DNA of 64,000 bases from Macrostomum hystrix (GCA_950097015.1 CATNEN010000002.1:9300001-9364000); one strand, 5' to 3'; counted from the first letter of the stretch, positions 3,001 to 30,674 are shown. The notes: generated from the sequence alone by a model not told the origin. Program-made: numbers and translations.

Positions 3001-3348
3001 CGAGCAGCAGAGCCTTGTTGGGCGGCTGCAGGTAGCCATCGATCAGGGCTTTGGCCGCACTGCCAGTTTTGTCCTGGAACAGGTGAATGAGGAGTTGCTT
3101 TGTTTTCCTGGCCACGCGGCATTGGCGATACAGCCATTACTCACTGTGTCAGCGATGAGCAGTGTGTACTTCATCTCGAAGGAGGGAAACAGGTGGCTGA
3201 TGTTGTTAGTAACATAGCGGAATGTGAAGTTCAGGTAGTCAGGGTCCATTGCGTAGGCGGATGCGCTGGAACTGATGCACAGAATGTGCACCAACTGTCT
3301 TCCAGCTGCTGAAGATGCCAGCATTAGACAGAGAACAAGCACCAGCAT
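1..3348 (-). CDS. GABA-B-like class C GPCR, paralogue A (signal peptide + ANF/Venus-flytrap domain; 7TM part lies beyond window start). Exons approx 3348-3145, 3073-2936, 2182-2012, 1917-1816, 1352-1278, ~880-693, ~610-380, ~275-45
   Basis: Hydrophobic N-terminus MLVLVLCLMLASSAAG. GT/AG-bounded exons splice in frame. Motifs SNTSPALSDKSSYPYYIRM, FGWKKIGLI, DIRIFIV, GAYGPKYFW, GRVVFDANGDR, VGTYSPMTGMMNW..DFWFAG resemble GABA-B receptor ectodomains. Exon-by-exon similarity to paralogue B. Confidence 0.8.
1000..1228 (+). mobile_element. 5'-truncated copy of tRNA-derived SINE family X
   Basis: Body sequence (ctgacgatgaaaaattcaggacggatgt...ggcagaattgcctcctcgctg) matches the copies at 9861, 20514, 36015 and 39525. 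Confidence 0.65.
2527..2745 (-). mobile_element. tRNA-derived CORE-like SINE (family Y)
   Basis: Reverse complement reads TAGCCTAGTGG (A box)...GGTTCGATTCC (B box), then ttgtgtcctttagctagacac...cttcagttcacccagctgttaaatgggtaccagc (CORE-like). Further copies at ~6505, ~21905 and ~31125. Confidence 0.75.
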
Positions 3349-7900: not shown

Positions 7901-10900
7901 CGCCATTATTGTTGGTTGTTGATATTGTTTATTTTTTATTGCCCCAAAATTGGATTCGCCACAGAGGTTCATATAGAGCTATGTTAGTTGTTCTTGTCAC
8001 CAGGGTCTCCGTCAATAACCCCACCATGCTAACTCATACTTTGATTCATATAGCATTCTTTTGTTGAAATCGGTTATTTGTTTTGGGAGCTAATCTTGAA
8101 GTAGGCAGTGGTATGTAAGAAATTTATATTTACAGGGTCCCATCACCTTCGATGCGAGGAATGACCGTACCGCCGAACTTTTCATCTACCAGATTCGGGG
8201 TGAGTGCTTCGCTTCCAAATGTCAGTTTGAACACGTTCCACACCCGCAGCAATTTAAATGCTACAATTACAGACGGAGCGAGAGACCTTGTCGCCACCTT
8301 CAATCCTGTTTCGGGAGACATTTTCTGGCTGAAGCAGCTGTGGTTTGCTGGTATGTTATACATTTCTTATAATTAATTCCCACCCGGTGGGACAGCTTTT
8401 TGGGGCGCAGGGTGAGGCGCTATGCGCCCCGCTATGCGCCTCTCGCCGCCTGGGCGCACGGTGATTTTCCTATACGCCCCCGCTATACGCCTCCCGCCAG
8501 TGGGGCGCACGGTGATTTTCCTATACGCGCCCGCTATACGCCTCCCGCCAGTGGGGCGCACGGTGATTTTCCTATACGCCCCCGCTATACGCCTCCCGCC
8601 AGTGGGGCGCACGGTGATTTTCCTATACGCCCCCGCTATACGCCTCCCGCCGCCTGGGCGCACGGTGATTTTCCTATACGCCCCCGCTATGCGCCTCCCG
8701 CCGCCTGGGCGCACGGTGATTTTCCTATACGCCCCCGCTATACGCCTCCCGCCGCCTGGGCGCACGGTGATTTTCCTATACGCCTCCCGCCAGTGGGGCG
8801 CAGGGTTTTATTAACATCACTTTTTCGCGGTTTTTTATCTTTTCGTGTAGTACACGTGACTTGTGGTTGCAGAAAAATATTATTTCACCTTTAACATGTC
8901 TAGTTGCTCTGAAATTTGGAAATATTGCTTGCATCATTTTCGAAATTTTCTACTAAATTGTCCAACTTTTTTTTCGTATGCGAAAATATTTGGAGGAAGA
9001 TTAATTCACCATGTCCTACTATTAGTAGAAACGATAGGATACTGTTTCAGTCATATCCTATAGCTCATTCCATCCGAAAGACATGTAGACTGCAATTTAA
9101 TTATAACACTGCATGAAAACTTTGTGTAATAGCTAGCCACTATATAAAACATGGTTGCTTCTAACTTCTGTTTCCTCTAAATTTTTCATAGAGTACAGGG
9201 ACTCAAAATTCGTCGAGATCAATCAGGATTAATGGAGGTCCCAAAATCGATTCCGTGCCTTCCCTAGATTCCCAAGATTCCCTAGATTAGTAGGGTGAGA
9301 GGGAGATCAGTAGGCTGAGAGGGAGAGCAGGTAGGGTGAGAGGGGATCAGGTAGGGTGAGGAAGTGTGGTAGTGAGATGCAGTAGAGTGAGAGGAAGTGG
9401 GGTAGTGAGATGCAGTAGATTTCGCAGGTAATCCGAGTTTAATTGTATTTACGAATGTTCCCAGGTGTACAGGGAAGTCAGTTATTTAAAATTTTAGTTA
9501 ATTTCCATTAATTCCATGATAAGTCAGAAAGAGATCAAAGAAAAGAATTGAGACAGAAAGAATTTAAATTTTTAGTTTCGCGTTAGTTGATTTCTCTCGT
9601 AGGCACCAGTTAAGTTTGGCATGCTTAGTCACTCTTTAACTGACCATATATTTATATACATATTTATTTAACGATTTGTATTAGTAAATTAAAAATTTTG
9701 AAACCTGTAGAGAAACCTGAAAGCAGTAGAGAGCCTGTTTATGAAAACGATTTGGAAATGCCAATGCATGCATGGGCCTGCGTGCTTTGACGTATCTTTG
9801 ATCTTTGGTGATGCGTCAACCCGCAGTCACAGAGGAGGCAAGTCTGATCCGTCCATTTAGGGGTGAGTGGAAGAGCGGTCAACGCGTTTGCCTCTCGCAT
9901 TGAATGACGATTCCGCAGCGAGGCCACATTCATTTGGGGCGCTGCCGCGGGGAGACGGTTTGGGGACTTGTCGTGCAATTCACGCCCTTGAGGGCCAACC
10001 TCCAAGGCACTGTGAAAGTGTACACTGCCTGACGATGAGAAAGTCAGGGCAGATGTACACACCTGTGTGAGCGTGTGCCTGCATGCGGCAATTGTGCGTG
10101 TGTCCTCAGGAGTCAGCGAAGCAGGCAGAATTACCTACTCGCTGGTTGTGGGTCTAGTGTCACCAAATGATGTGCCATTGACAGCAGCCCTCCTGCAATT
10201 ATGATTTTTGTTAAGTCTGTCCGTTCCGCTGTTCCCTGAGCGCTAAGGAACACTGATTTGTACATCTGCTTGACTACTCCCAACATCAACAAGCAGTGAG
10301 CACTACCACTCTACCTTGTTGGTGGGTTGTTGGAATTGGTGATGACGAAATTAGCTGGCACTGCAGACACAAGTTAAGAAGCTGCAGTGCAATAGATGAC
10401 AGAAGACCCAGCGTACTTGATTCTAAAGTAGAAATCTACTTGCTGTCATCTGTCATCTGCCTCCCAATCTGAAATCTGTCATCTGTGTAAAATCAATACC
10501 AATAGTGAGTTAAGTTTCAATTGCAACAACACAGGCTCCACGCCCCCTGTCGACCAGCCGGTCCTGCAGCAGAGCCTGACCACTCTCGCCTTGCCCGTCG
10601 CCATCGTCATCATAGCTGTCTCCAGTCTGGGCGCCACCCTCTCCGCTGCGTCCATCTGTCTGAACTTCCTCCGCTCAGAAGTTACAGTCATCAGGCGAAG
10701 CAGTCCTCGAGCGAACAGCTGTGTTGCTGTCGGCTGCCTCCTGAGCTACGCGAGCTGCTGCATCCAAGCCATGAATTTGCACCTAGGAGCGGACTGCGGA
10801 CTCTGGTGGGCTCAGACAGCTCTGCTCTGCTGCGGCTTCTCAATCAGCATGGCGGCCATTTTGTTTAAGATGTGGCAACTGCACTGCCAGCTTGCTGGAG

Positions 10901-13900
10901 AGGTAGGTAGTGGAAGCTAGAACCTAGATTTGAGTACATTAAGGTGCTTAGGCCAGACTAATAGTACTTCATGCTCTACGAGCTATCAAGCTTGTAGCCC
11001 AGTGGAAGAGCTTCGAACTACGGACCAAGAGGTCGGGAGCTCAGCTCAAGGCAAGCGTTGCTTCTGTTCACCGGACTCTAAAACGGGGGGTAGAAATAGG
11101 GGTGGGTGTGGCTGCCTCCCCCAGTCGACAACATTTTTGGAGCCATGCAAAAAGCTCAGGACTGTCCATCCGACTAAGCAAGGCTAGGTGTAATTTCAAT
11201 TGCGATACATTTTAGAGGCCGTTGGTGGTGTCGTTCTAGATCGGAAACATTTGTAATTGCAGCATTCACGCAAATCAGTGCTGCCAGTGCTGGTTGCTGC
11301 TCTGCTAGGATTGGATGCAGTCATCCTGACGGCTTGGATCCTGGCCGATCCTCTGCAGCGCCAGCTCATCGATCTGTGGGACTTGGTGAGTCTAGCGAGA
11401 ATCCAGACCTGCTTGTCACAACTTGCTAGCTATTGAAAATAAAACTTGAGTCCGACTATGCAAACCTGTACACAGGAGAGAGCTGCCAGTTCAGTCCTGC
11501 GAGAGCAGCTGCCAGTCTGCCGATCCAACTTCACAAACGTCTGGAATGCTCTTCTCATCGTGATCAAAGGTATGAGGACAGAGCTGAGAGCAGTCTCGTG
11601 GGGGATTATTTTTTAACTGAGGTTCCATTCGAATTCCAGCAAAAATTATCTTCAAGCCTGCTTATATGATTAATATGAGAAGCGAACGCACGAAAAGTTC
11701 CTTTTTGACGTATCTTCGGTGCATGAGTCATTTGATTAATAGGCTATATTTTAGTTTTTTACTAGCACACTAAGCCCCCGTTGGGGCACTACTGTTCAGA
11801 CACAAAAATATTTTGTAATGCAGAAGGACAAAACACACCTGAAAGCAAACAAAAACGAAAACTCATTTCGTTCAGTAATAATTTCCCTGATTGCGAATAT
11901 ACGTGATTGCGATTCATTGAAAATTTGAATTCTCACTAAATGCAAAAATAGTCAGTCTGAGCCAGGGGCGTAGCTAGGGGGGGGGCAAGGGGGGCCGCGG
12001 CCCCCCCCAAACGGCTGGCGAACTTTGCGGCGCCCCCCAGCCTCAGCCGCGATGGCGCCCCCCCCACCCGTCCTCCACAGACATACTTTTGTGGCCCCTC
12101 AAGCCATCCTCCTTGCCCTATGTACAGTAGGCCCATTGATAAGGCATCACTCCACTCACTTGCTGTGTTAGAAAATGAGGGAAGGGGTAATAAAACTGAT
12201 GTGTATATTATAGCAAAGTGCGTTTTAGGTTTGGGGTCTGTAGGAGGAGGGGGTCGGAGGTCTGGTCTTTGTCTGTGAGGTTAGGTCTGTATAGTATTAG
12301 CGGAGGGCGCTGTGGGAGGAGGAGAGGTTGGGGTTGGGGACTGCGGTTGCTTAAGCAATTTTAAAGCCACGCTAGAGCAACACTGGCTGCACATAATCTG
12401 ACCGTGCTAACTTTATTCTTTAGCTGTTACACGTTTGATAATGGAAAACAACATTGGGGCATCAGCTGTCCCTGCACAAGCATGCGTGGCTTCAAGCAAC
12501 AAGAGGAAGCGTTCCGGAGCAGAAAATCGCCGTCAGAAGCAAGCAAAGAAACTAAAGGCTAGCGCTTCAGGCTGCATGAAACTAACGTCTATGTTTGAGT
12601 CAAGAAAAGACCGAACAGAAAGCAGGGCTGCTGGCGCCCATGCTGCCGGTGACGGCGCCCTTGCTCCCTGTGACGGCGCCCATGGTGCCTGTGACGGCGC
12701 CCTTGCTGCCGGTGACGGCGCCCTTGCTGCCTGTGGCGGCGTCCTTGCTCCCTGTGACGGCGCCCATGGTGCCTGTGACGGCGCCCTTGCTGCCGGTGAC
12801 GGCGCCCTTGCTCCCTGTGACGGCGCCCTTGCTGCCGGTGACGGCGCCCTTGCTGCCTGTGGCGGCGCCCTTGCTGCTGGCGCCCTTGCTGCCGGTGACG
12901 GCGCCCTTGCTGCTGGCGCCCTTGCTGCCGGTGACGGCGCCCATGCTGCCGGTGACGGCGCCCTTGCTGCTGGCGCCCTTGCTGCCGGTGACGGCGCCCA
13001 TGCTGCCGGTGACGGCGCCCTTGCTGCTGGCGCCCTTGCTGCCGGTGACGGCGCCCATGCTGCCGGTGACGGCGCCCTTGCTGCTGGCGCCCTTGCTGCC
13101 GGTGACGGCGCCCATGCTGCCGGTGACGGCGCCCTTGCTGCTGGCGCCTTTGCTGCCGGTGACGGCGCCCATGCTGCCGGTGACGGCGCCCTTGCTGCTG
13201 GCGCCCTTGCTGCCGGTGACGGCGCCCATGCTGCCGGTGACGGCGCCCTTGCTGCTGGCGCCCTTGCTGCCGGTGACGGCGCCCATGCTGCCGGTGACGG
13301 CGCCCTTGCTCCCTGTGACGGCACCCTTGCTGCTGGCGCCCTTGCTCCCTGTGACGGCGCCCATGCTGCCTGTGACGGCGCCCATGCTGCTGGCGCTCAT
13401 GCTGCTGGCGCCCATGCTGCTGGCGCCCATGCTGCTGGCGCCAATGCTGCTGGTGATGGTGCCCATGCTACCGATGCACCCCTCGCAGATATTGGCCTTG
13501 CAGTACAAAAGATGCATATGTTGTCAAGTGAGGAACGCAGTAATTTTTGTGAGCCATGGAGCCCTCTTCATGAAAATGACTATCCTTTTTCGCAGCATCA
13601 AGTGCAAGGGCGGTCACGTAAGAGAAAGCTGCTGCCCGTGCATCTTAAGCGATTTCCTTGGTTGTCGGTGAGTAAAGTGGCTGGACTAGAGGGAGCATTC
13701 TGTACACCATGTGTTCTGTTTTCCTCGGCCACAGGTGTTGGTGGCCGCACTAATGGTTGTGGGCAGCAAGCCGGTGCACTTGTTCGAAAGCCTCTGAAGA
13801 GGTTTGATGACTTAACTGGAAAGAAGGGCGTGCTTTCACTGCATGAGAAAAGCGATTACCACAAGAAAAGCGCTGAAAAAATGGACGAGTTTTTGAGACG

Positions 13901-16900
13901 CACTCACAAGGGAGAAAGTGCGCAAGACATTCGATCGCAGCTCAAGACCGCAAGGCAGCAGGAGATCATGAAGAATCGCGCAGGTCTAATCCCAATAATT
14001 GATTCTGTTCTGACGTGTGCTCGCCAGAACATCGCACTCCGTGGTCACCGCGGAGAGAATCAGCCACTGCAGCTGGATGCTGGAGAGCCTGAAAAAAATG
14101 ATGGAAACTTTCGGGCGCTGCTGCGTTTCCGAGCTCGAGGAGGCGATGCTGCTCTTTCTAACCATGTGAGCCAATCTTCTGCCAATGCAACTTATCTGTC
14201 TCCACAGATTCAGAATGAAGTCTTGGATGTTGCATTGAAATTAATTCGAGAGAAGGTCGTAATGCGTGTTCAACGTGCCGAATGCTGGGCTCTAATAGTT
14301 GATGAGACAATGGATCTGCAGAAGAGAGAGCAACTTGTCATTGTTGCCCGCTATCTGTCTGATGCTACTGACGGCTCTGTGCAGCAGAATGAGGACCCAG
14401 TGGCAATGCTAGACCTTGTATCCGACATCGCTGGCGGTATCGACTCATGGGAAGATGTTCGGCTAAGTGGCGAGAACATCGCTGCAGCAATTGTTCGCCG
14501 GCTGGAGGTGCTGGGGCTTAATCTCACTAGATGCGTGGCTCAGTGTTATGATGGTGCCTCTGCAATGGCCAGTGAGAGAGTGGGTGTTGCTGCACACATT
14601 CGGAGACAAGCTCCCCAGGCCGACTACTTCCACTGCATGGCCCATTGGCTAAATCTGAGTGCAGTGCGTGCCGTTAAAGTCCCGACTGTCAGGAACTCGC
14701 TCGGAGTCATTCAAGAAGTTGTTGCCGCATTTCGGTCAAGTAGCAAAAAGACATTCCTACTAAAGCAGATAATTGAAGAGTCAAATGAGACTGTCGGATC
14801 AAAGCGGCAGCTTGCGAGTCTGTGTGAGACGCGGTTTTTGGAACGACACACTTCCATCGTCACGTTTCGGCAACTTTTCAATCACGTTGTGCATGCGCTG
14901 GAAGAAATGAAGACCTGGCAAGGATCAGATGCGGCTCGATCAGCGACAACTCTGCATGCTGCAGTTCACAATTTCGAGTTCATTGTTGGAATGATCATCC
15001 TTGAGAACCTTGCCGGCTTACTACTGCCAGTGTCGAGGCGACTTCAAGCTGCAGACAATGAGCTTGTCGAAGCTGTCCGTGAGGTGAAAGAACTGCTGTC
15101 AGCGCTGGAGTCAATGCGAAGCGAGCAGCAGTTTCACGAGTTGTTTAGGGAAGCGCGGGCTCTCGCTCTTCAACTTGACATTGATCAGAAAATTCCTCGT
15201 CAAGGACGCCACGTTGCACGTTTTCAGACGGCGCAAGTGGCGCAGGCGCAGACGCAGCCCACCACCACTAGTGCCGAGGATCACTACAGAACTTCTGTGT
15301 ACTTTCCGGCAGTGGATGCTATAGCAGCCGACATCATGCTACGGTTTGGAGTGCCACAGCAGCGTGCCTTCAATCTCAGCTGTCTGCTGCCAGTGAACTT
15401 TGATGACTCAAAGCTGGACGCGCAGCTAACCTCTGTGCAAGAAGCAGCAGAGAAGTACTGCAGCCTGCTGATGGATCCGTTCGTTGTTGTAAAGCAGGAG
15501 TATATACTATGGCGACAACAGTGGTCAACAGTCGCTGCTGAACATCGTCCGGGTACAGCGGTACTAGCCTTGCGAGCCTGTAGGAAAGTTAAGTTTCCAA
15601 ACATGTACCGCCTACTGGCTGTCTATGCTACTCTGCCTGTGTCGACCTGTGAGCCAGAGAGAGTATTTTCAAAGCTGAAGCAGACATTGACATGTTGTCG
15701 GAGCACAATGGGTGAGGGACGCTTGGAATCTGTGCTTCTACTTCAGTGTCACCGAGCTGACTGCCCTAGACCAGCAGAGGTTCTGGACTTGTTTGCCACA
15801 TCGGCTCGTCGATTGAAGTTGCTTCTTTAAGAAGCTCCACATTGCATGCAGTGACACACTTTCTCATATGATCTCTCACTGATCATTGACTGATTCAAGT
15901 CAACCTCGCGCTGTCGCACATTCTAATTTATTTTTCTCAGTGTTCTCAACTGCTTTTATACTTTTGAAAATTCCGTAAAGTGCAGTAATAAAAAATGGTG
16001 ACTACGATCGAACATGTATTTTGCAATTTCATTTAACAGTGTTCGTTGCCCAAAAGTGAAGATATTGGTCAATGAAATATGCACATTGGCATTTGATAAG
16101 AGTTCTTTCTTGCTCAGAGATGGGTAAAATTGCGCTCCTAAAATTAAAATATTGGCGCCCCCCTGGGAAGCGGCCCCCCCCAATAAGAAATCCTGGCTAC
16201 GCCCCTGGTCTGAGCTTGAATACATTTTGAGACATCCGGTCTGTACACCAAGAGCCCCATTGGGGCAAAAATTACACAAGTAACTTACGTTTCATACAAC
16301 CCAGCTTAATGCTACTAAGGTACATGTGATTACTATCCCTCAGCAGTAAAAAACCAATGTTCCCCCAGCAGCAGAGAACTAATTCCCCCCAGCAGCAGAG
16401 AACTAATTCCCCCCCAGCAGCAGAGAACTAATTCCCCCCCAGCAGCAGAGAACTAATTCCCCCCCAGCAGCAGAGAACTAATCCCCCCCAGCAGCAAAGA
16501 ACTAATTCCCCCCCAGCAGCAGAGAACTAATCCCCCCCCCAGCAGCAGAGAACTAATTTCCCCCCAGCAGCAGAGAACTAATTTCCCCCCAGCAGCAGAG
16601 AACTAATTCCCCCCCAGCAGCAGAGAACTAATCCCCCCCAGCAGCAAAGAACTAATTCCCCCCCAGCAGCAGAGAACTAATTCCCCCCCCCAGCAGCAGA
16701 GAACTAATTCCCCCCCCCAGCAGCAGAGAACTAATCCCCCCCCAGCAGCAGAGAACTAATTCCCCCCAGCAGCAGAGAACTAATTTCCCCCCAGCAGCAG
16801 AGAACTAATTCCCCCCCCCAGCAGCAGAGAACTAATTCCCCCCAGCAGCAGAGAACTAATTCCCCCCAGCAGCAGAGAACTAATCCCCCCCAACAGCAAA

Positions 16901-25832: not shown

Positions 25833-27566
25833 CTAGCTCTCCGCATCCGAGTCACACAAATCTAGGGCCCATTCGGGCGCACCACGAAGCTCCAGTTCCA
25901 CGCGGTGCTGGAAGGCGGCGCGGAATGCCAGTTGATGAGGCTCCGCAATAGCATAGCAGGACAGCAGAGCCAGGCGGGTCAGCCAAGGACAGCTGCTGAC
26001 GATGGAGGTGAGAGACTGTGAAGTCAGCTGTTTGCAGTTGTCCAGGCATAGCCACCGCAGACCCCTGGCGATCGGACTGGCGCAGATGTCGGCGACCGAC
26101 TCATCGGTGAGACTGGAGCCGCTGCAGATGGAGAAGAGCACCACAAACTCGCGCAGGTCGTGTGGGAAAGCGGAGAGTTCGCGCAATTTCGCCCAGGCCT
26201 GTCGGGTGAGGCGACTGCAGCTGCTGAGGCGGAGGTTACGCAGGCGGGGTAGCTGGATGAGCAGCGCTGACAAAAGCTCATCGTTGCAGTCAGTAAGGAC
26301 TAGGTGGGTGAGCTCTGTGGGATAAATGTGATGTGTCGTTGTTCAATGCCAGTACGTACTTGTGAGACTCTCGATCGCAATACAACCTAAAAAAATGAAA
26401 GTGGACAGCCGACTAACCGACTTGACTTAAGAGCTTCGTGTCTCACAAGTCTTCAAGAGTTTTGTGCACCGAATCAACTGACCAGCTTTCTTTCATTTAC
26501 TAGTACAACTCAACTTTGTGGTGCTTCCTCATCGCTCTAGAACAGGGGTCGGCAAACTCCGGCCCGCGGGCCAGATGCGGCCCTCGAAGCTCCCAAATCC
26601 GGCCCTTAGCTCCTCCTAACACCTATTCTAAAGTACACCCTATCTCATCTCTCTTGCGTCTTATCTCCCACGTCTCATCTCTCTTGCGTCTTATCTCCCA
26701 CGTCTCATCTCTCTTGCGTCTTGTCACCCCCGTCTCATCTCTCACCTGTCTCATCTCTCCTGTGTCTCATCTCTCCCCTTTCTTCATGCGGCCCGCCGTC
26801 GTCTTTAAGATTCTCTCTTTAGCCCGCGGGGGTATATACAGTTGGGTCAGCGGAATGAGTCCAAATTTCCGCGGAATTCTGTGTGAAAGCGTCCCCTGCT
26901 TGCTCTTCTCGGATTGGTGGGTGTCGGGCCAATAAACCGAGGGGAGGGGTTTTCGATGTCACTTGGGATTCCCCATCCTTGCACGCAGCAATTAATTTTC
27001 TACCTGGAATCTAGTGCTTGCACCTGGACAGCAATCGAAATAATTTTGAAAATTGATGAGAACAGCTTCGCCATAAACACGATTAGTTAGAATAAGAGAA
27101 AATGAGCCGCCGCTCATCAAGACAACCGACCATTTGGTTGCTAGTACTTTTTGACGCAGATGGTCTAGTAGATTCTATTGAATTTAAGCAGGCAGTGCCT
27201 AAAGTTGGAGAGCGAATAAACATAAACTACTATGGAGACGAACAGCTTGTCGAAGTCTTAGCAGTGTCAGGTGAGCTAAAGCTTCATATCTGCATACGCT
27301 ACTCAATTCACTAATGCATTCAATAATTCAGTCTTTCTTTTCATTTTCTCATTTTCTCTACCTTTTCCTGCCGAGCGAAGAAACCAACATCTCCGTTCCT
27401 GCCGGAATGGTCAGCAGGGCTGACCATAGGCACACTCATTTTTTCAAAGCAGGCAACATCACAAGTCCTTTCCTGCACTTTTTATCGGCAGCAACGGAAT
27501 ACAAGTTAGGCAGGTTAAGGTTAATGGGCGGCCCTCGCCTACCCCGCTGTGTCAGCTTCGACCACC

Positions 27567-27599
<33 letters not shown>

Positions 27600-30500
27600 C
27601 AAAATCCTCTCCTCCACTCTTTCGTCTTTCCTCTATACCACTAACTGACTCTAAATTGTAGTACAGTTCAGATATTGCAATGTAAAATTTTTGTTCTTCT
27701 TCAGATGACAAGGCCATTGTTCGGCAAGCCGACTTTGACTTTAACAAAAGCTCACGGTTGAAGGCCATCGAAGAAGAAAAAAAGTGCAGAGAAGAACAAC
27801 ACGCACCTTCGACTGGCGGCTTCCTTGATGTGCATGTACATGCTCACCAACCTACTGTTCCCAACAAGGTGCACCAAGCCGCCCCTTCCACTATTCTACC
27901 CAATACTCTGAAGAGAAAGGCATCGTCTTCTTTAACAGTGGCGAGTAAAATTCTTAAGAAATCAAAGGCACAGAAGACTGCCCCTGCTTCAGTTATCAGC
28001 CGCGCGATGCCCCCTACAGAAACTAATCAGCAGGAAGCGGCTGCCAACGCAGCCATTCGAGATCCGGCTCTGACTGAGACAGTCAGCTCACTCTCCGAGT
28101 CATCATTAACCAGAGTGCTAGGAAGTGTTGATAAGATTCTGGAATTCAACCGTCTCAGACAGAATGAAGGAGGCGCCATTAATTCTTTGATAGTGGAACA
28201 GTTGAACGAGCTTTCGACAAGCATCAAGCTGATTCAAAAGGATTTAGCGGAGATAAAGGAAAGTGTATGCTTTCTAGCCTTGCAAGCGACCACAGCCGTC
28301 TCACAGACTCCGCGGCCTGAGACTCTTCGGCACGGGACTCCGCTACCCGTGACTCAGCGGCATGAGACTCCGCTACCCGTGACTCCGCGGCTTGAGACTC
28401 CGCTACCCGTGACTCAGCGGCATGAGACTTCGCTACCCGTGACTCAGCGGCATGAGACTCCGCTACCCGTGACTCCGCGGCTTGAGACTCCGCTACCCGT
28501 GACTCCGCTGCATGAGACTCCGCTACTCGTGACTCCGCGGCTTGAGACTCCGCGGCACGAGACTCCACGCCACGAGACTCCGCGGATTGAGAAAGTCGAA
28601 ATCCCGATCGACATGATTGACCCACGTTGTCAGTCACTATCGAAGTACGATGAAATGGGAGACTTTCAAAGTCCTGTCTATTACTCTGCTGAATCCCTAG
28701 ACCCACGCTTGCTTCATACCTTGAAAATTCAAAGCAACAATGCGAGGTACTTTGCCAAGCTGTTGTCTAGGATTTCCATCCCAGGTTTTGAGCGCTTCAA
28801 AATGACCATGGGGAATCAACGTGCGGATGGAAAGAAGGCATTCCCGAAGCACATCTTTGACGTTGTTCTTGAGGTCACGAGCAGGCATTTTCAAGGCGTA
28901 TCACGAGAGCTGGTTGTCGGCGCAATCAACGAGGAAACAAGGAAGCTGCTCAGCGAGGTGCGCAACTGTCACATCAAAAGAAAGTGCTGCTACTGCAAAA
29001 TGCGATCCTAACTCATTCCTGTGCATGGTTTATTCAAGCGCATAACATTGGCGAAAATGATTGCCAGCGTAGTACATGTAATACTTCCAATGAGTAATGA
29101 CCCTCCTTTCTCCCAGGGAGGAAGGGTTTCTTATTTTATGTAATTGAAAGCGTGTCAAATGTTTTCGGGCTAACTTTTGCCTCTCGCCTAAAGTATCGCG
29201 AATTCCAGAAATGGGTAACCGGAATTTAATTTCGTAATCCTAAGGTTGCCGACCCCTGCTCTAGAAGATTATCAAAAAGACCTTGGCCCCCTCACCCGAG
29301 CAGCCCGACAAGCCGGTCCGAAGCCCTTCAATGCCGCCGCAGTTGTTGTTGAAGTCCAGCTGCAGCCGAGTGAGTTTCGCTGGCAGCCGAGTCTGCAGAT
29401 CCGCCTCGGTCAGGCTGCCGCACAGGAGACGCAGCTGCTGAAAGTCGGGCCGCAAGCTGCCAACAACGCGGCGGTAGCCAGCGCTGTCTAGCGGCTTGCA
29501 GTACGGCACTTCCAGGCAGCTTAACTGCGGACAGCCTTTCAGAAGCGCGACGAGACCATCGGCCGTCAAATCTCGAAGGCCAAACCAAGGAGACGCCTGC
29601 CTGACAGAGCGGAGGCCGGGGCAGGAAACAGCCAGCGCCTTCGCGAGTCCGTCGATAAAGTCCGAGTCGTGCAGCGTCAGCCCGGACAGACAGGGCAGGC
29701 GGGGCAGCACCGGCTCCAGTCCTGATGGGAGCGGGTGGCAGCGATTTAAGCTCCGAGACCTTCTGATATCATCCTAATGATTGCCTCAATAGAAACGCTT
29801 CCAGCGTCTAGGCTTATTGAGTAGTTATAGCTAAGAAGCAAATGAAAAATCAAATCGCTTCGAATACGAGTACGCCGTTACAAAACGTCGAATGCGTCTC
29901 GGACAATGCTGACGACTCGTTAACGAGGCTCTAGAGTCATTAGAGTCGCTTGCGACGATAAGAGAGGTGTTTAAGTAGTATACAGGGCATTCGCACCATT
30001 TTCACCGTACGTGTGTCAGACTTACCAGACTCCAAGAGCCTCCAAACGGTTAAGGAGGTCAGCTCTGGGCACCTGGGCAGATCAAGATCACCGAACGGAA
30101 AGCTGCCGTGAAGGTTCAGAGAAACCAGGCGAGCCGCTAAACTGCCAAGCAATGTCAAGGATCTTTCGCTGTTTAACGAGATCTCTAAGTGTGACAGTTT
30201 CGGACAGCCAGCCAGCAGCTGCGCTACAGAGTTAGCAGTCAGCACCTGCGTGCTGCCGCATTCGAGCAGCCGCAGGCTTCGAAGCTGAGGACAACAGCGA
30301 CCCAGAGCAGTCAGCGGGTTCTCGGCATCTTCACAAATCATCGGCTTGTATATAGTGAGGCTCTGTAGGCTGAGTGACTCGGATAGCAGGGCAGCCACGC
30401 ATCCACTGCGGACACGAAAGTCCAGCTCCAGCAGCGAGCCGGACATCCAGCTCGAGATACGGCCTAGCAACTCCGCGGTGATCACCGAAGGCTTGCCGTA

Positions 30501-30674
30501 AATGACGAGTCGGCGCCACAGCCGAGGTTGCATGGCGAGATTGTACCAGCGGCGGCTCAGCTGGGCGCAGCGGGCGCGGCTGGTTTGGTCCAGCATCGCC
30601 AGGATCCGCGTCAGGACTTCAGATGGCAGCCAATCCATCAGGCAGGGACTGGAGCAGTCTGTAGAGTTTTTCAT
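25833..30674 (-). CDS. F-box/LRR (FBXL-like) protein, 3 exons: 30674-30026, 29721-29296, 26314-25833 (1557 nt, in frame)
   Basis: F-box LMDWLPSEVLTRILAMLD...RARCAQLSRRWYNLAMQPRLWR. Cys-containing LRRs CPQLRSLRL, CPGLRSV, LDNCKQLTSQSL...CPWLTRL. Donors GTAAGT and GTGAGG and the acceptors give matching phase-1 junctions. Confidence 0.85.
26543..29258 (+). mobile_element. Non-autonomous hAT (Charlie/Buster-type ends) element, 2716 bp, carrying a BEN-domain-like gene; lies in F-box intron 2
   Basis: TIR CAGGGGTCGGCAA / TTGCCGACCCCTG (13 bp perfect). Perfect 8-bp TSD CTCTAGAA at 26535-26542 and 29259-29266 (nTCTAGAn target typical of this group). No transposase motifs inside. Confidence 0.9.
27102..29011 (+). 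CDS. Two-exon cargo gene (27102-27270, 27705-29011): N-terminal WLLVLF module, coiled coil, Thr-Pro repeats, C-terminal BEN-like domain
   Basis: GTGAGC donor and ttcttcAG acceptor join in frame. Coiled coil EQLNELSTSIKLIQKDLAEIKES. C-terminal NNARYFAKLLSRI...MGNQRADGKKAFPKHIFDVVLEVTSRHF...VVGAINEETRK follows the BEN helical pattern (recognised by eye). Confidence 0.65.

Follow-up and report, generated by a model that had tools for sequence, protein, structure and literature searches.

The interval 26535-29266 of the window (the whole 64,000-nucleotide stretch of Macrostomum hystrix DNA analysed here) is best explained by two nested transposons, namely a hAT MITE into which a two-gene Tc1-like element, now left as a truncated copy, inserted, a reading to which we give a probability of about 0.8. 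As judged from sibling copies, the intact family would be about 5 kb long, would possess 39-bp TIRs and TA duplications, and would carry two convergent genes, with a two-exon gene of 491 codons on the left and an intron-containing Tc1-like transposase gene on the right. The initial annotation of this interval is partly supported. It had favoured a Pack-hAT-type cargo element spreading a BEN gene, whereas the ORF was found elsewhere only with a Tc1-type TIR and TA flanks; the other reading it offered, in which a separate element encoding BEN is nested close to the right end of a MITE, is correct, and the segment has its own TIR and TA at sibling loci.

A hAT-type MITE and the segment inserted into it

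The outer shell is bounded by two identical 8-bp TSD copies, CTCTAGAA, at 26535-26542 and 29259-29266, and its TIR CAGGGGTCGGCAA (26543-26555) matches the inverted right copy (29246-29258) at 13 of 13 positions and at 15 of 16 on extension, so that the perfect hAT-type TIRs and TSD described initially are confirmed. Within the window the TIR 13-mer, allowing at most one mismatch, occurs three times against 0.08 expected. The MITE is split into a left part of about 296 bp (26543-26838, plus strand), which contains 30-bp tandem repeats at 26643-26777, and its last 16 bp (29243-29258, minus strand), together about 312 bp without coding capacity. It belongs to a common family, with at least 152 matches across contigs of the genome and a TSD pattern of nnnTAGAn, and copies of about 318 bp without the insert, each flanked by an 8-bp TSD of its own, were found at L008 (GCCTAGAC) and L010 (GTTTAGAT). 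The 8-bp TSD, the short TIRs, the dispersed copies and the lack of a transposase identify the shell as a non-autonomous hAT-superfamily MITE. It resembles hAT-derived MITEs in its 8-bp TSD, short CAGGGG... TIRs and lack of coding capacity, and is in no way unusual, being merely the landing site of the inner transposon. No DDE transposase was found in the interval 26535-29266, and the autonomous hAT of the window (11963-16207) has ends, CAGGGGCGTAGCTAGG, unlike those of the MITE; both observations had been made before and hold.

The MITE lies in an intron of a putative F-box/LRR gene on the minus strand, whose upstream exon was placed at 29297-29710, with a putative donor GT at 29294-29295. The next ORF (29943-30674, minus strand) carries an F-box domain (PF12937, E 4e-13), and an LRR signal at 25836-26273 (LRR_4, E 7.7e-4) is weak and sub-threshold. 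The accessory ORF runs antisense within this intron, and the donor is 29 bp from the TSD, in accordance with the arrangement first reported (about 30 bp).

Comparison with the empty MITEs delimits the insert. At the insertion point L008 and L010 have GGGGTATATAAGGTTGCC, with three TA (also read ...GGGGTATATAAGGTTGCCGACCCCTG), while the window has three TA ahead of the insert and one extra TA behind it, the left copy of the TA target dinucleotide being at 26837-26838 and the right-hand TA at 29241-29242; the insertion TA is 16 bp from the right end of the MITE. The right-truncated Tc1/mariner-like transposon (26839-29240, plus strand), consisting of the left end and the accessory gene, starts with a 39-bp left TIR, CAGTTGGGTCAGCGGAATGAGTCCAAATTTCCGCGGAAT (26839-26877, plus strand, starting CAGTTGGG). 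This end is present in the genome six times as a left end and three times inverted as a right end, and only once, as the left TIR, in the window. The inverted ends, at C1:966134, C38:26219666 and C1:3977674, lie downstream of three inner-segment loci. The siblings L050, L051 and L052/L053 continue into a minus-strand Tc1-like transposase and an inverted TIR with TA flanks, and in these three loci left and right TIRs are 95-97% identical. In four independent loci the inner segment begins at the equivalent of 26839 and is preceded by TA, and TA also follows the right TIR in L050 and L051. The inner element shows the Tc1/mariner hallmarks of a TA duplication and TIRs starting CAGT; CGGAAT motifs in the TIRs are too few to carry a claim, and the element also has subterminal CGGAAT and CCGCGG motifs.

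The right end of the inner segment in the window, ...CGTAATCC, is read as a truncation, not as the true end of a full Tc1-like copy. When the window is compared with L006/L050 and with L008 and L010, the deletion junction (29241-29243) falls on a TAA microhomology that occurs both inside the element (AATCC TAA AGTCC in L050) and in the flanking MITE sequence (TATA TAA GGTTGCC). Having lost the transposase half together with its TIR, the window copy is an immobile fragment, unable to transpose on its own. As to the order of events, a non-autonomous hAT MITE first inserted into the intron of the F-box/LRR gene, making the CTCTAGAA duplication, and a Tc1/mariner-like transposon then entered the TA near the right end of the MITE. 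A later deletion would have removed the transposase and the right TIR, ending exactly at the transposon/flank boundary on TAA, as would be left if the transposase had cut at the right end and the break had been closed through microhomology. Finally, the locus was copied twice, by segmental duplication or as assembly redundancy.

The accessory gene, its BEN-like C-terminus and the transposase

The accessory gene consists of exon 1 (27102-27270, plus strand; 56 codons and one base, with the donor G|GTGAGC), a phase 1 GT...AG intron (27271-27704, plus strand; GT at 27271, AG at 27703-27704) with a (CT)n microsatellite inside, and exon 2 (27705-29011, plus strand; stop at 29009-29011). The joined exons comprise 491 codons, matching the two-exon ORF of about 490 aa proposed initially, whose intron position is also conserved in Macrostomum lignano. 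Exon 2 encodes, in order, a basic region, a conserved helical segment, decapeptide repeats, a BEN-fold domain and a Cys-rich tail with the motif C-H-x5-CC-x-C, and is collinear with the homolog P0001 over 367 aligned columns (E 6e-50). The decapeptides, a Pro-rich linker of ETPLPVTQRH-like units, derive from a 30-bp tandem repeat of 9.3 copies at 28305-28583 (plus strand). The protein also has a small conserved N-terminal module, and its helical segment is probably a coiled coil.

The protein family is rare, since searches run exon by exon yielded three homologs among 1.84 billion representatives. A word-based protein search with the C-terminal domain gave no match, and a repeat with a four-sequence profile returned the same three homologs only; ESM look-alikes of exon 1 provided no lead. 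The contigs of P0001 and P0003 were not recovered in the metagenome scans. In the gene list of the P0001 contig, three small genes follow downstream on the minus strand, no more than a hint of a linked transposase.

The C-terminus had been described as BEN-like, and this stands at the level of fold and not at that of the Pfam profile. Run on both exons of the accessory protein and on parts of them, PF10523 gave no match at E up to 10, the only Pfam match being a sub-threshold HTH_37, and a genome scan with the same profile at E up to 1 produced seven weak matches, none at the window locus. A PDB sequence search with the family profile gave no match either. Structure prediction, which had been suggested as a further check, turned out in favour of the claim. 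AlphaFold with a single sequence was unusable (pLDDT 35.7), whereas an AF2 model from the four-sequence alignment, on which alone the fold comparison is built, reached a pLDDT of 81.3 and a pTM of 0.76. The best five of 48,161 chains for this model were the BEN domains of BEND3, NACC1, Bsg25A, BEND6 and BANP, with fold Z from 8.2 down to 6.5, followed by the next match at 4.7. Overlay on solved BEN domains covered 83-98 residues, with an rmsd of 2.6-3.4 A and a sequence identity of 8-13%. Foldseek assigned the BANP BEN domain a probability of 0.91, all E-values being above 0.25 and only probability and TM-score being informative for BEN entries, and the ESM neighbours of the accessory protein were BEN clusters. 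A Z of 6.5-8.2 can also be reached by helical models whose helices are simply arranged alike, and the case for BEN is made by the fact that the top five matches are all BEN, together with the gap down to 4.7. An all-alpha BEN fold of residues 32-132 of the modelled 143-aa C-terminus (28673-28975, plus strand) is in this way supported by the model.

The transposase half is known from the siblings, where the gene lies on the minus strand, opposite to the accessory gene, and has at least three introns. The initial annotation had missed this Tc1/mariner-like carrier, whose transposase half is deleted in the window copy. Proteins homologous to exon A (E 1e-18 to 3e-5) bear PF01498, PF13565 or PF13358, and one of them is a 'Tc1-like transposase DDE domain' protein of Mytilus; exons A-D map in order and in one frame onto the intronless transposase of the Tara scaffold L070 with 36-60% identity. 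The L070 transposase itself has DDE_3 at 40 bits and matches Sleeping Beauty SB100X with E 7.7e-12. Direct Pfam matches on single transposase exons were sub-threshold, and a PDB search with exon A gave no transposase match. A D-35-E spacing was counted by eye in exon C of L050 and in the Mytilus ORF, and the 35 residues equal the DD35E figure given for Traveler (PMC7093834). These homologies point to a sibling transposase of Tc1/mariner type, with HTH domains and a DDE_3 catalytic domain.

Relatives of the two genes beyond this genome

Tc1/mariner is the textbook minimal transposon, with one gene between two inverted repeats, and described Tc1-like families are about 1.5-2.5 kb long with a single, usually intronless transposase gene. 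A host BEN-fold gene might have been captured recently as an accidental passenger, with no role for the transposon, as would agree with Tc1/mariner elements normally having one gene. We consider this improbable. In M. lignano, a homolog of about 37% protein identity conserves, at protein level, both exons and the intron position, its exon 1 being found with E 3.7e-5 and with a donor at the same phase 1 position. An end of TACAGT type lies 267 bp ahead of its ATG, against 263 bp in the window, and this end aligns to the left end of the window element better than 500 of 500 shuffles. Because end, distance and intron position match at about 37% identity, the linkage has outlasted a long divergence, and the accessory gene has probably belonged to the transposon for a long time. 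This genome yielded no copy of the accessory gene outside the element, which also speaks against a recent capture.

A comparable pairing was found in more distant taxa. In Mytilus coruscus (L071), a BEN-matching gene and a DDE_3 gene are enclosed by 28-nt TACAGT TIRs that are flanked by TA, and the BEN protein has a Pro-rich linker, TPLPITP, analogous to that of the window protein, and by eye a probable coiled-coil segment. Its similarity to the window protein is weak (E 0.003-0.004 per segment). The Tara scaffold L070 has a BEN gene above the Pfam cut-off 1.6 kb from the transposase, with no convincing TIRs around the pair, and hhalign detected no similarity between the window family profile and the L070 BEN protein (probability 0.14). 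The two genes are convergent in the Macrostomum family and divergent in Mytilus and Tara; since orientation differs, the BEN genes may be independent acquisitions, and BEN proteins of three taxa that are barely or not alignable likewise fit independent captures. On the other hand, the recurrent linkage of BEN with this transposase clade argues for selection on the pairing. Among the other transposase relatives, L066-L069 showed no homolog of the accessory protein, and the called genes of L066-L069 and L072 have no BEN on record, these contigs being mostly too short to judge. In the literature searched, we found no description of a Tc1-like family with a BEN-fold second gene.

Copies, mobility and comparison with known systems

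Copies C38 and C1b share the same internal deletion (28124/28812) at different loci with different flanks, and the presence of one deletion derivative at two sites is evidence of mobility. Since these derivatives moved without the BEN domain, the element either does not need the accessory protein in cis or receives it in trans. None of the copies in this genome has both genes intact, the only open transposase being at C1:962850-966172. Substitutions among copies run at about three nonsynonymous to one synonymous, which looks neutral, on few differences and with dead deletion derivatives as the comparison copies.

Only the window copy keeps the full 491-codon frame open. Taken together with the loss of the transposase and one TIR, so that it cannot excise, and with the duplication of the locus, this could be read as incipient domestication, in which the host retains the copy for a new DNA-binding factor of BEN type. 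Such an outcome is very unlikely here, as the copy is young (96-98% identical to decaying siblings) with no purifying selection demonstrable, it lies antisense inside the intron of another gene, and its two duplicates have apparent frameshifts, which are either real or assembly errors.

Copies with the same hAT ends and distinct TSDs, expected if the hAT-bounded unit had spread, did not appear in a genome search, which returned three copies of the composite with identical flanks and the same TSD, differing by one substitution and single-base indels. Because the flanks are identical, we take the composite to be one insertion, later duplicated, with no movement on the hAT ends. While perfect 13-bp TIRs and an 8-bp TSD do enclose the ORF, and a hAT transposase could in principle still move the composite, a Pack-type cargo element moved as a unit by a hAT transposase and spreading the BEN gene is hardly credible given that all copies share one site, that many other MITE copies lack the insert, and that the segment with the ORF occurs at three other loci with a TIR of its own and flanked by TA. 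Pack-MULEs and other Pack-type elements, which also hold host-like coding sequence between transposon ends, are only superficially alike: they amplify with their cargo, whereas the cargo between the hAT ends of the window represents one insertion and is a transposon in its own right, with separate ends. At the level of the window, the "hAT cargo element" is thus an artefact of nesting.

The nested Tc1-like element is alike to Tc1 (DD34E), Traveler (DD35E), Incomer (DD36E) and Sleeping Beauty in its TA duplication, CAGT ends and HTH plus DDE_3 transposase, and the Macrostomum family differs from them in its inferred length, a transposase gene with three or more introns and a second, convergent gene for a BEN-fold protein. 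PIF/Harbinger elements share cut-and-paste movement and a second gene for a DNA-binding protein, and differ in superfamily, 3-bp TSDs and transposase, their partner having a Myb/SANT fold as against the BEN fold of the Macrostomum element. The Myb/SANT-like partner of PIF/Harbinger is known to be required, and is a model for a partner at transposon ends, while Tc1 transposases carry their own end-binding HTH domains. With respect to the protein, the C-terminal fold matches the BEN factors Insensitive, Elba/Bsg25A, BEND3, BEND6, BANP and NACC1 (PF10523), and the layout is like that of BEN-solo and DUF4806-BEN proteins, with a helical or coiled-coil region before a C-terminal BEN. These BEN factors are host regulators, whereas the Macrostomum protein is transposon-encoded, has a Cys-rich tail and lacks a PF10523 match.

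BEN domains are sequence-specific DNA binders. By analogy, the accessory protein might be a transposon-encoded dimeric DNA-binding factor acting on the element's own ends or promoters, a proposal whose chances we rate as somewhat short of even. Such a factor would either limit transposase expression and copy number or, as does the Myb-like partner of PIF/Harbinger, help to assemble the ends. A wider proposal, more tentative again, is that of a two-component system in a Tc1/mariner-like (D-35-E) clade spanning flatworms, bivalves and at least one marine eukaryote, each element encoding, next to its transposase, a BEN-fold DNA-binding protein that has a helical region upstream and that controls or aids the element's transposition. 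Such a system would parallel, within Tc1/mariner, the partner arrangement of PIF/Harbinger, and host BEN-domain regulators could have arisen from it.

If true, a lineage that has long kept a BEN-fold second gene would be a new architecture for the Tc1/mariner superfamily, and it raises the question of whether a separate DNA-binding partner lets such transposons control themselves or assists them at their ends. The DNA-binding domains of THAP and CGGBP1 have a transposon origin, and one may likewise ask whether transposon genes gave rise to some of the many orphan invertebrate genes of the BEN and DUF4806-BEN kinds, and to host BEN factors in general.

Nesting of a Tc1/mariner-like element in a hAT MITE

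The interval 26535-29266 is bounded by the 8-bp target site duplication (TSD) CTCTAGAA (26535-26542 and 29259-29266), and directly inside the TSDs lie the hAT-type terminal inverted repeat (TIR) CAGGGGTCGGCAA (26543-26555) and its reverse complement (29246-29258), a 13-mer with a chance expectation of 0.08 per window. The perfect TIRs and TSD described in the initial annotation are thus both present, as is the antisense placement in an F-box gene intron about 30 bp from the donor: the host F-box (29943-30674; PF12937, E 4e-13) is on the minus strand, and the insertion lies 29 bp into the intron, counted from the putative donor at 29294-29295. The LRR signal in this gene is weak and sub-threshold. 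A second, apparently autonomous hAT element occupies 11963-16207, with TIRs CAGGGGCGTAGCTAGG (11963-11978 and 16192-16207), confirming the earlier remark that its ends differ from those of the MITE beyond CAGGGG; its ORF (12435-15830, 1131 aa) carries a hAT dimerisation domain (PF05699, E 2e-8) and DUF4371.

Searching the 220-Mb assembly (42 contigs) with the whole interval returned three full-length matches, together with more than 100 matches confined to the first ~310 bp. Uninterrupted MITE copies of ~318 bp (loci L008 and L010) read CAGGGGTCGGCAA...GCGGGGTATATAAGGTTGCCGACCCCTG and are flanked by 8-bp duplications of their own, GCCTAGAC or GTTTAGAT, and the hAT ends of the interval are those of this ordinary MITE. 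Compared with these copies, the segment 26839-29240 sits between TATATA and AGGTTGCC of the MITE, plus one additional TA. The three full-length composites (C2:9326535; C2:9396394, inverted and 70 kb off; C9:1773842) all have identical flanking F-box gene sequence and an identical TSD, and a comparison across 5.7 kb shows a single substitution besides single-base indels, mostly of the long-read-assembly type. Because of these common flanks and TSD and their near-identity, they go back to a single insertion, later multiplied by segmental duplication or assembly redundancy. This is an outcome that the initial annotation itself named as grounds for refutation, and the proposal of a hAT-bounded unit moving with its cargo is abandoned. 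The F-box intron with its nested insert is thus found in triplicate (the window copy, C2:9396394-9399123 inverted, and C9:1773842-1776575), the C9 copy having the largest number of indels. This pattern suggests a segmental duplication of very recent date, haplotigs left uncollapsed, or long-read errors that polishing did not remove.

The alternative raised in the initial annotation, a separate element nested in the MITE, proved correct, since the ORF-bearing segment has its own 39-bp ends and TA flanks. The segment beginning at 26839 was found at three more loci with unrelated flanks (C38:26217480, C1:3964954 and C1:962850), each preceded by TA, and its first 39 bp recur inverted 2.2, 12.7 and 3.3 kb downstream, respectively, followed by TA. 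Between the two ends, the sibling copies carry an intron-interrupted transposase gene on the minus strand. What remains in the window is the left-hand portion of a Tc1/mariner-like transposon. The sibling L050 (C1:962850-966172) reads ...TTTCGTAATCC TAA AGTCCGATT..., continuing into the transposase, while the window reads ...TTTCGTAATCC TAA GGTTGCCGACCCCTG, where MITE sequence resumes; starting at the internal TAA, the deletion therefore took the rest of the element, right end included, and stopped exactly at the flank. A break at the right end, the transposase cutting site, followed by microhomology repair would produce such a truncated copy. No second Tc1-type TIR occurs anywhere in the 64-kb window, and the window copy is an immobile fragment.

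The transposase and its small family

The family is very small, with four independent insertions, and the transposase is present at only three of the four. The copies at C38:26217480 and C1:3964954 share an internal deletion (28124/28812) at different sites, therefore a deletion derivative has transposed. An open transposase exon A was found only at C1:962850, whose accessory gene has been inactivated by a deletion that fuses 27262 to 28949, thus the two intact genes of this genome reside only on different copies. We infer a two-gene ancestor of ~5 kb. Exons B-D of L050 also appear open, with consensus GTAAG donors; this copy is inserted in retroelement-like sequence, and ORFs in its flanks (C1:962300-962850 and 966172-966700) look integrase-like by eye.

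Exon A (220 aa) comprises the HTH region and the first D (motif FTDE), and its homologs among 5.8 billion sequences searched (E 1e-18 to 3e-5), including a Mytilus coruscus 'Tc1-like transposase DDE domain' protein, are annotated PF01498, PF13565 or PF13358. While single M. hystrix exons gave sub-threshold Pfam matches only, exons A-D are collinear in a single frame (36-60% identity) with an intronless transposase on the Tara Oceans scaffold L070. This L070 protein scores 40 bits against Pfam DDE_3, above the cut-off, and E 7.7e-12 against the catalytic domain of Sleeping Beauty SB100X. Counted by eye, 35 residues separate the second D (QDNDPKH) from the E (SPVE), as in the Mytilus ORF.

The accessory gene and BEN genes elsewhere

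The two-exon ORF of ~490 aa reported earlier is a sound gene model of 491 codons (ATG 27102; donor G/GTGAGC after 27270; acceptor TTCTTCAG/ before 27705; stop 29009-29011), and all genomic copies are located within the Tc1-like element. A coding minisatellite (28305-28583; 30-bp unit, 9.3 copies, 87% identity) encodes ETPLPVTQRH-type decapeptides as a linker before the C-terminal domain, and because of this repeat the antisense strand is open for 160 aa. In searches run exon by exon, Pfam gave no significant match to the accessory protein, and an exhaustive HMMER search of 1.84 billion representatives with the 143-aa C-terminal domain recovered three true homologs: P0001 and P0003 from one JGI metagenome, and P0002 (PAA48096.1) from the flatworm Macrostomum lignano, the sole named source. 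The alignment of P0001 to exon 2 spans 367 columns (E 6e-50) and covers the basic region, a conserved helical segment around LEFNR, the linker and the C-terminal domain.

AlphaFold modelled this domain with pLDDT 81.3 and pTM 0.76 from a four-sequence alignment (pLDDT 35.7 from the single sequence). Among 48,161 PDB representatives, the five best structural matches were all BEN domains (BEND3 Z 8.2, NACC1 7.6, Bsg25A 7.2, BEND6 6.9, BANP 6.5; 83-98 residues aligned, rmsd 2.6-3.4 A), the next, unrelated match having Z 4.7. Foldseek agreed weakly (BANP probability 0.91, TM 0.46/0.54), and the language-model neighbours include 14 BEN clusters. On this ranking, Foldseek and the neighbours, we assign the predicted C-terminus to the BEN fold, as a divergent domain missed by the Pfam profile; the BEN-like C-terminus of the initial annotation is upheld at the level of the fold but not by the Pfam BEN profile.

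Among the transposase contexts, only L070, L071 and L072 came with over 5 kb of flanking sequence for assessment. On L070, a 248-aa protein passing Pfam BEN (27.0 bits vs cut-off 23.2, E 5.3e-6) lies 1.6 kb from the transposase, with no TIRs detected around the pair. At the Mytilus coruscus locus L071, the neighbour of a DDE_3 gene, 1.6 kb away, encodes 266 aa. By eye, its product shows a helical, heptad-like stretch; it also has a Pro-rich linker of the TPLPITP type, and its C-terminus matches BEN slightly below cut-off (22.1 bits, E 1.8e-4). Both genes lie within 28-nt TIRs TACAGTACGGGTAGAG... (3302-3329 and 9816-9843), with TA outside each. The Mytilus and window proteins show weak collinearity (helical segment, TPLPVT linker and LSKY motif; E ~0.003 per segment), and orthology of the M. 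hystrix, Mytilus and Tara BEN proteins is not demonstrable by sequence comparison. The gene pair is divergent in Mytilus and Tara, whereas it is convergent in the M. hystrix family.

Elsewhere in M. hystrix, a 447-aa ORF whose long N-terminal half is coiled-coil-like and whose similarity to BEN is weak (19.1 bits) occurs in at least four copies (C3:7695439, C26:1366268, C38:24315422, C38:33675054) within ~4.7 kb of shared sequence adjoining satellite-like tandem repeats, with no Tc1-like transposase in the 10 kb examined, and may be another repeat-borne BEN gene. Near-threshold BEN ORFs also lie at C34:195332-195517 and C7:4412489 (20.9 and 20.2 bits), with a Tc1-like transposase fragment ~7 kb upstream of the former (tblastn E 2e-8 to the Mytilus transposase).

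Age and possible role of the accessory gene

At the M. lignano locus L054, both accessory exons are recognisable (E 3.7e-5 and 1e-30), with the donor at the same phase-1 position and frameshifts in both exons. The ATG there is preceded, at a distance of 267 bp (263 bp in the window copy), by a sequence that starts with TACAGT. Its alignment with the left end of the window copy outscored all 500 shuffles; neither a transposase nor a right end was found within 10 kb. The accessory protein family is rare, and in both Macrostomum species it is linked to a Tc1-type end; the gene has thus long resided in the transposon. To our knowledge, papers on the DD34E-DD38E families describe single-gene elements, and no Tc1/mariner element carrying a BEN gene came up in the literature we searched.

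Substitutions among the copies look neutral, the copies compared being dead derivatives. That the gene is an accidental passenger seems unlikely to us. Domestication of the window copy, an immobile fragment, is very improbable. References cited in PMC11601247 establish BEN as a domain that binds DNA in a sequence-specific manner. We tentatively favour, with a probability of 35-45%, the reading that the accessory protein would act as a transposon-encoded DNA-binding regulator or a helper in end assembly.
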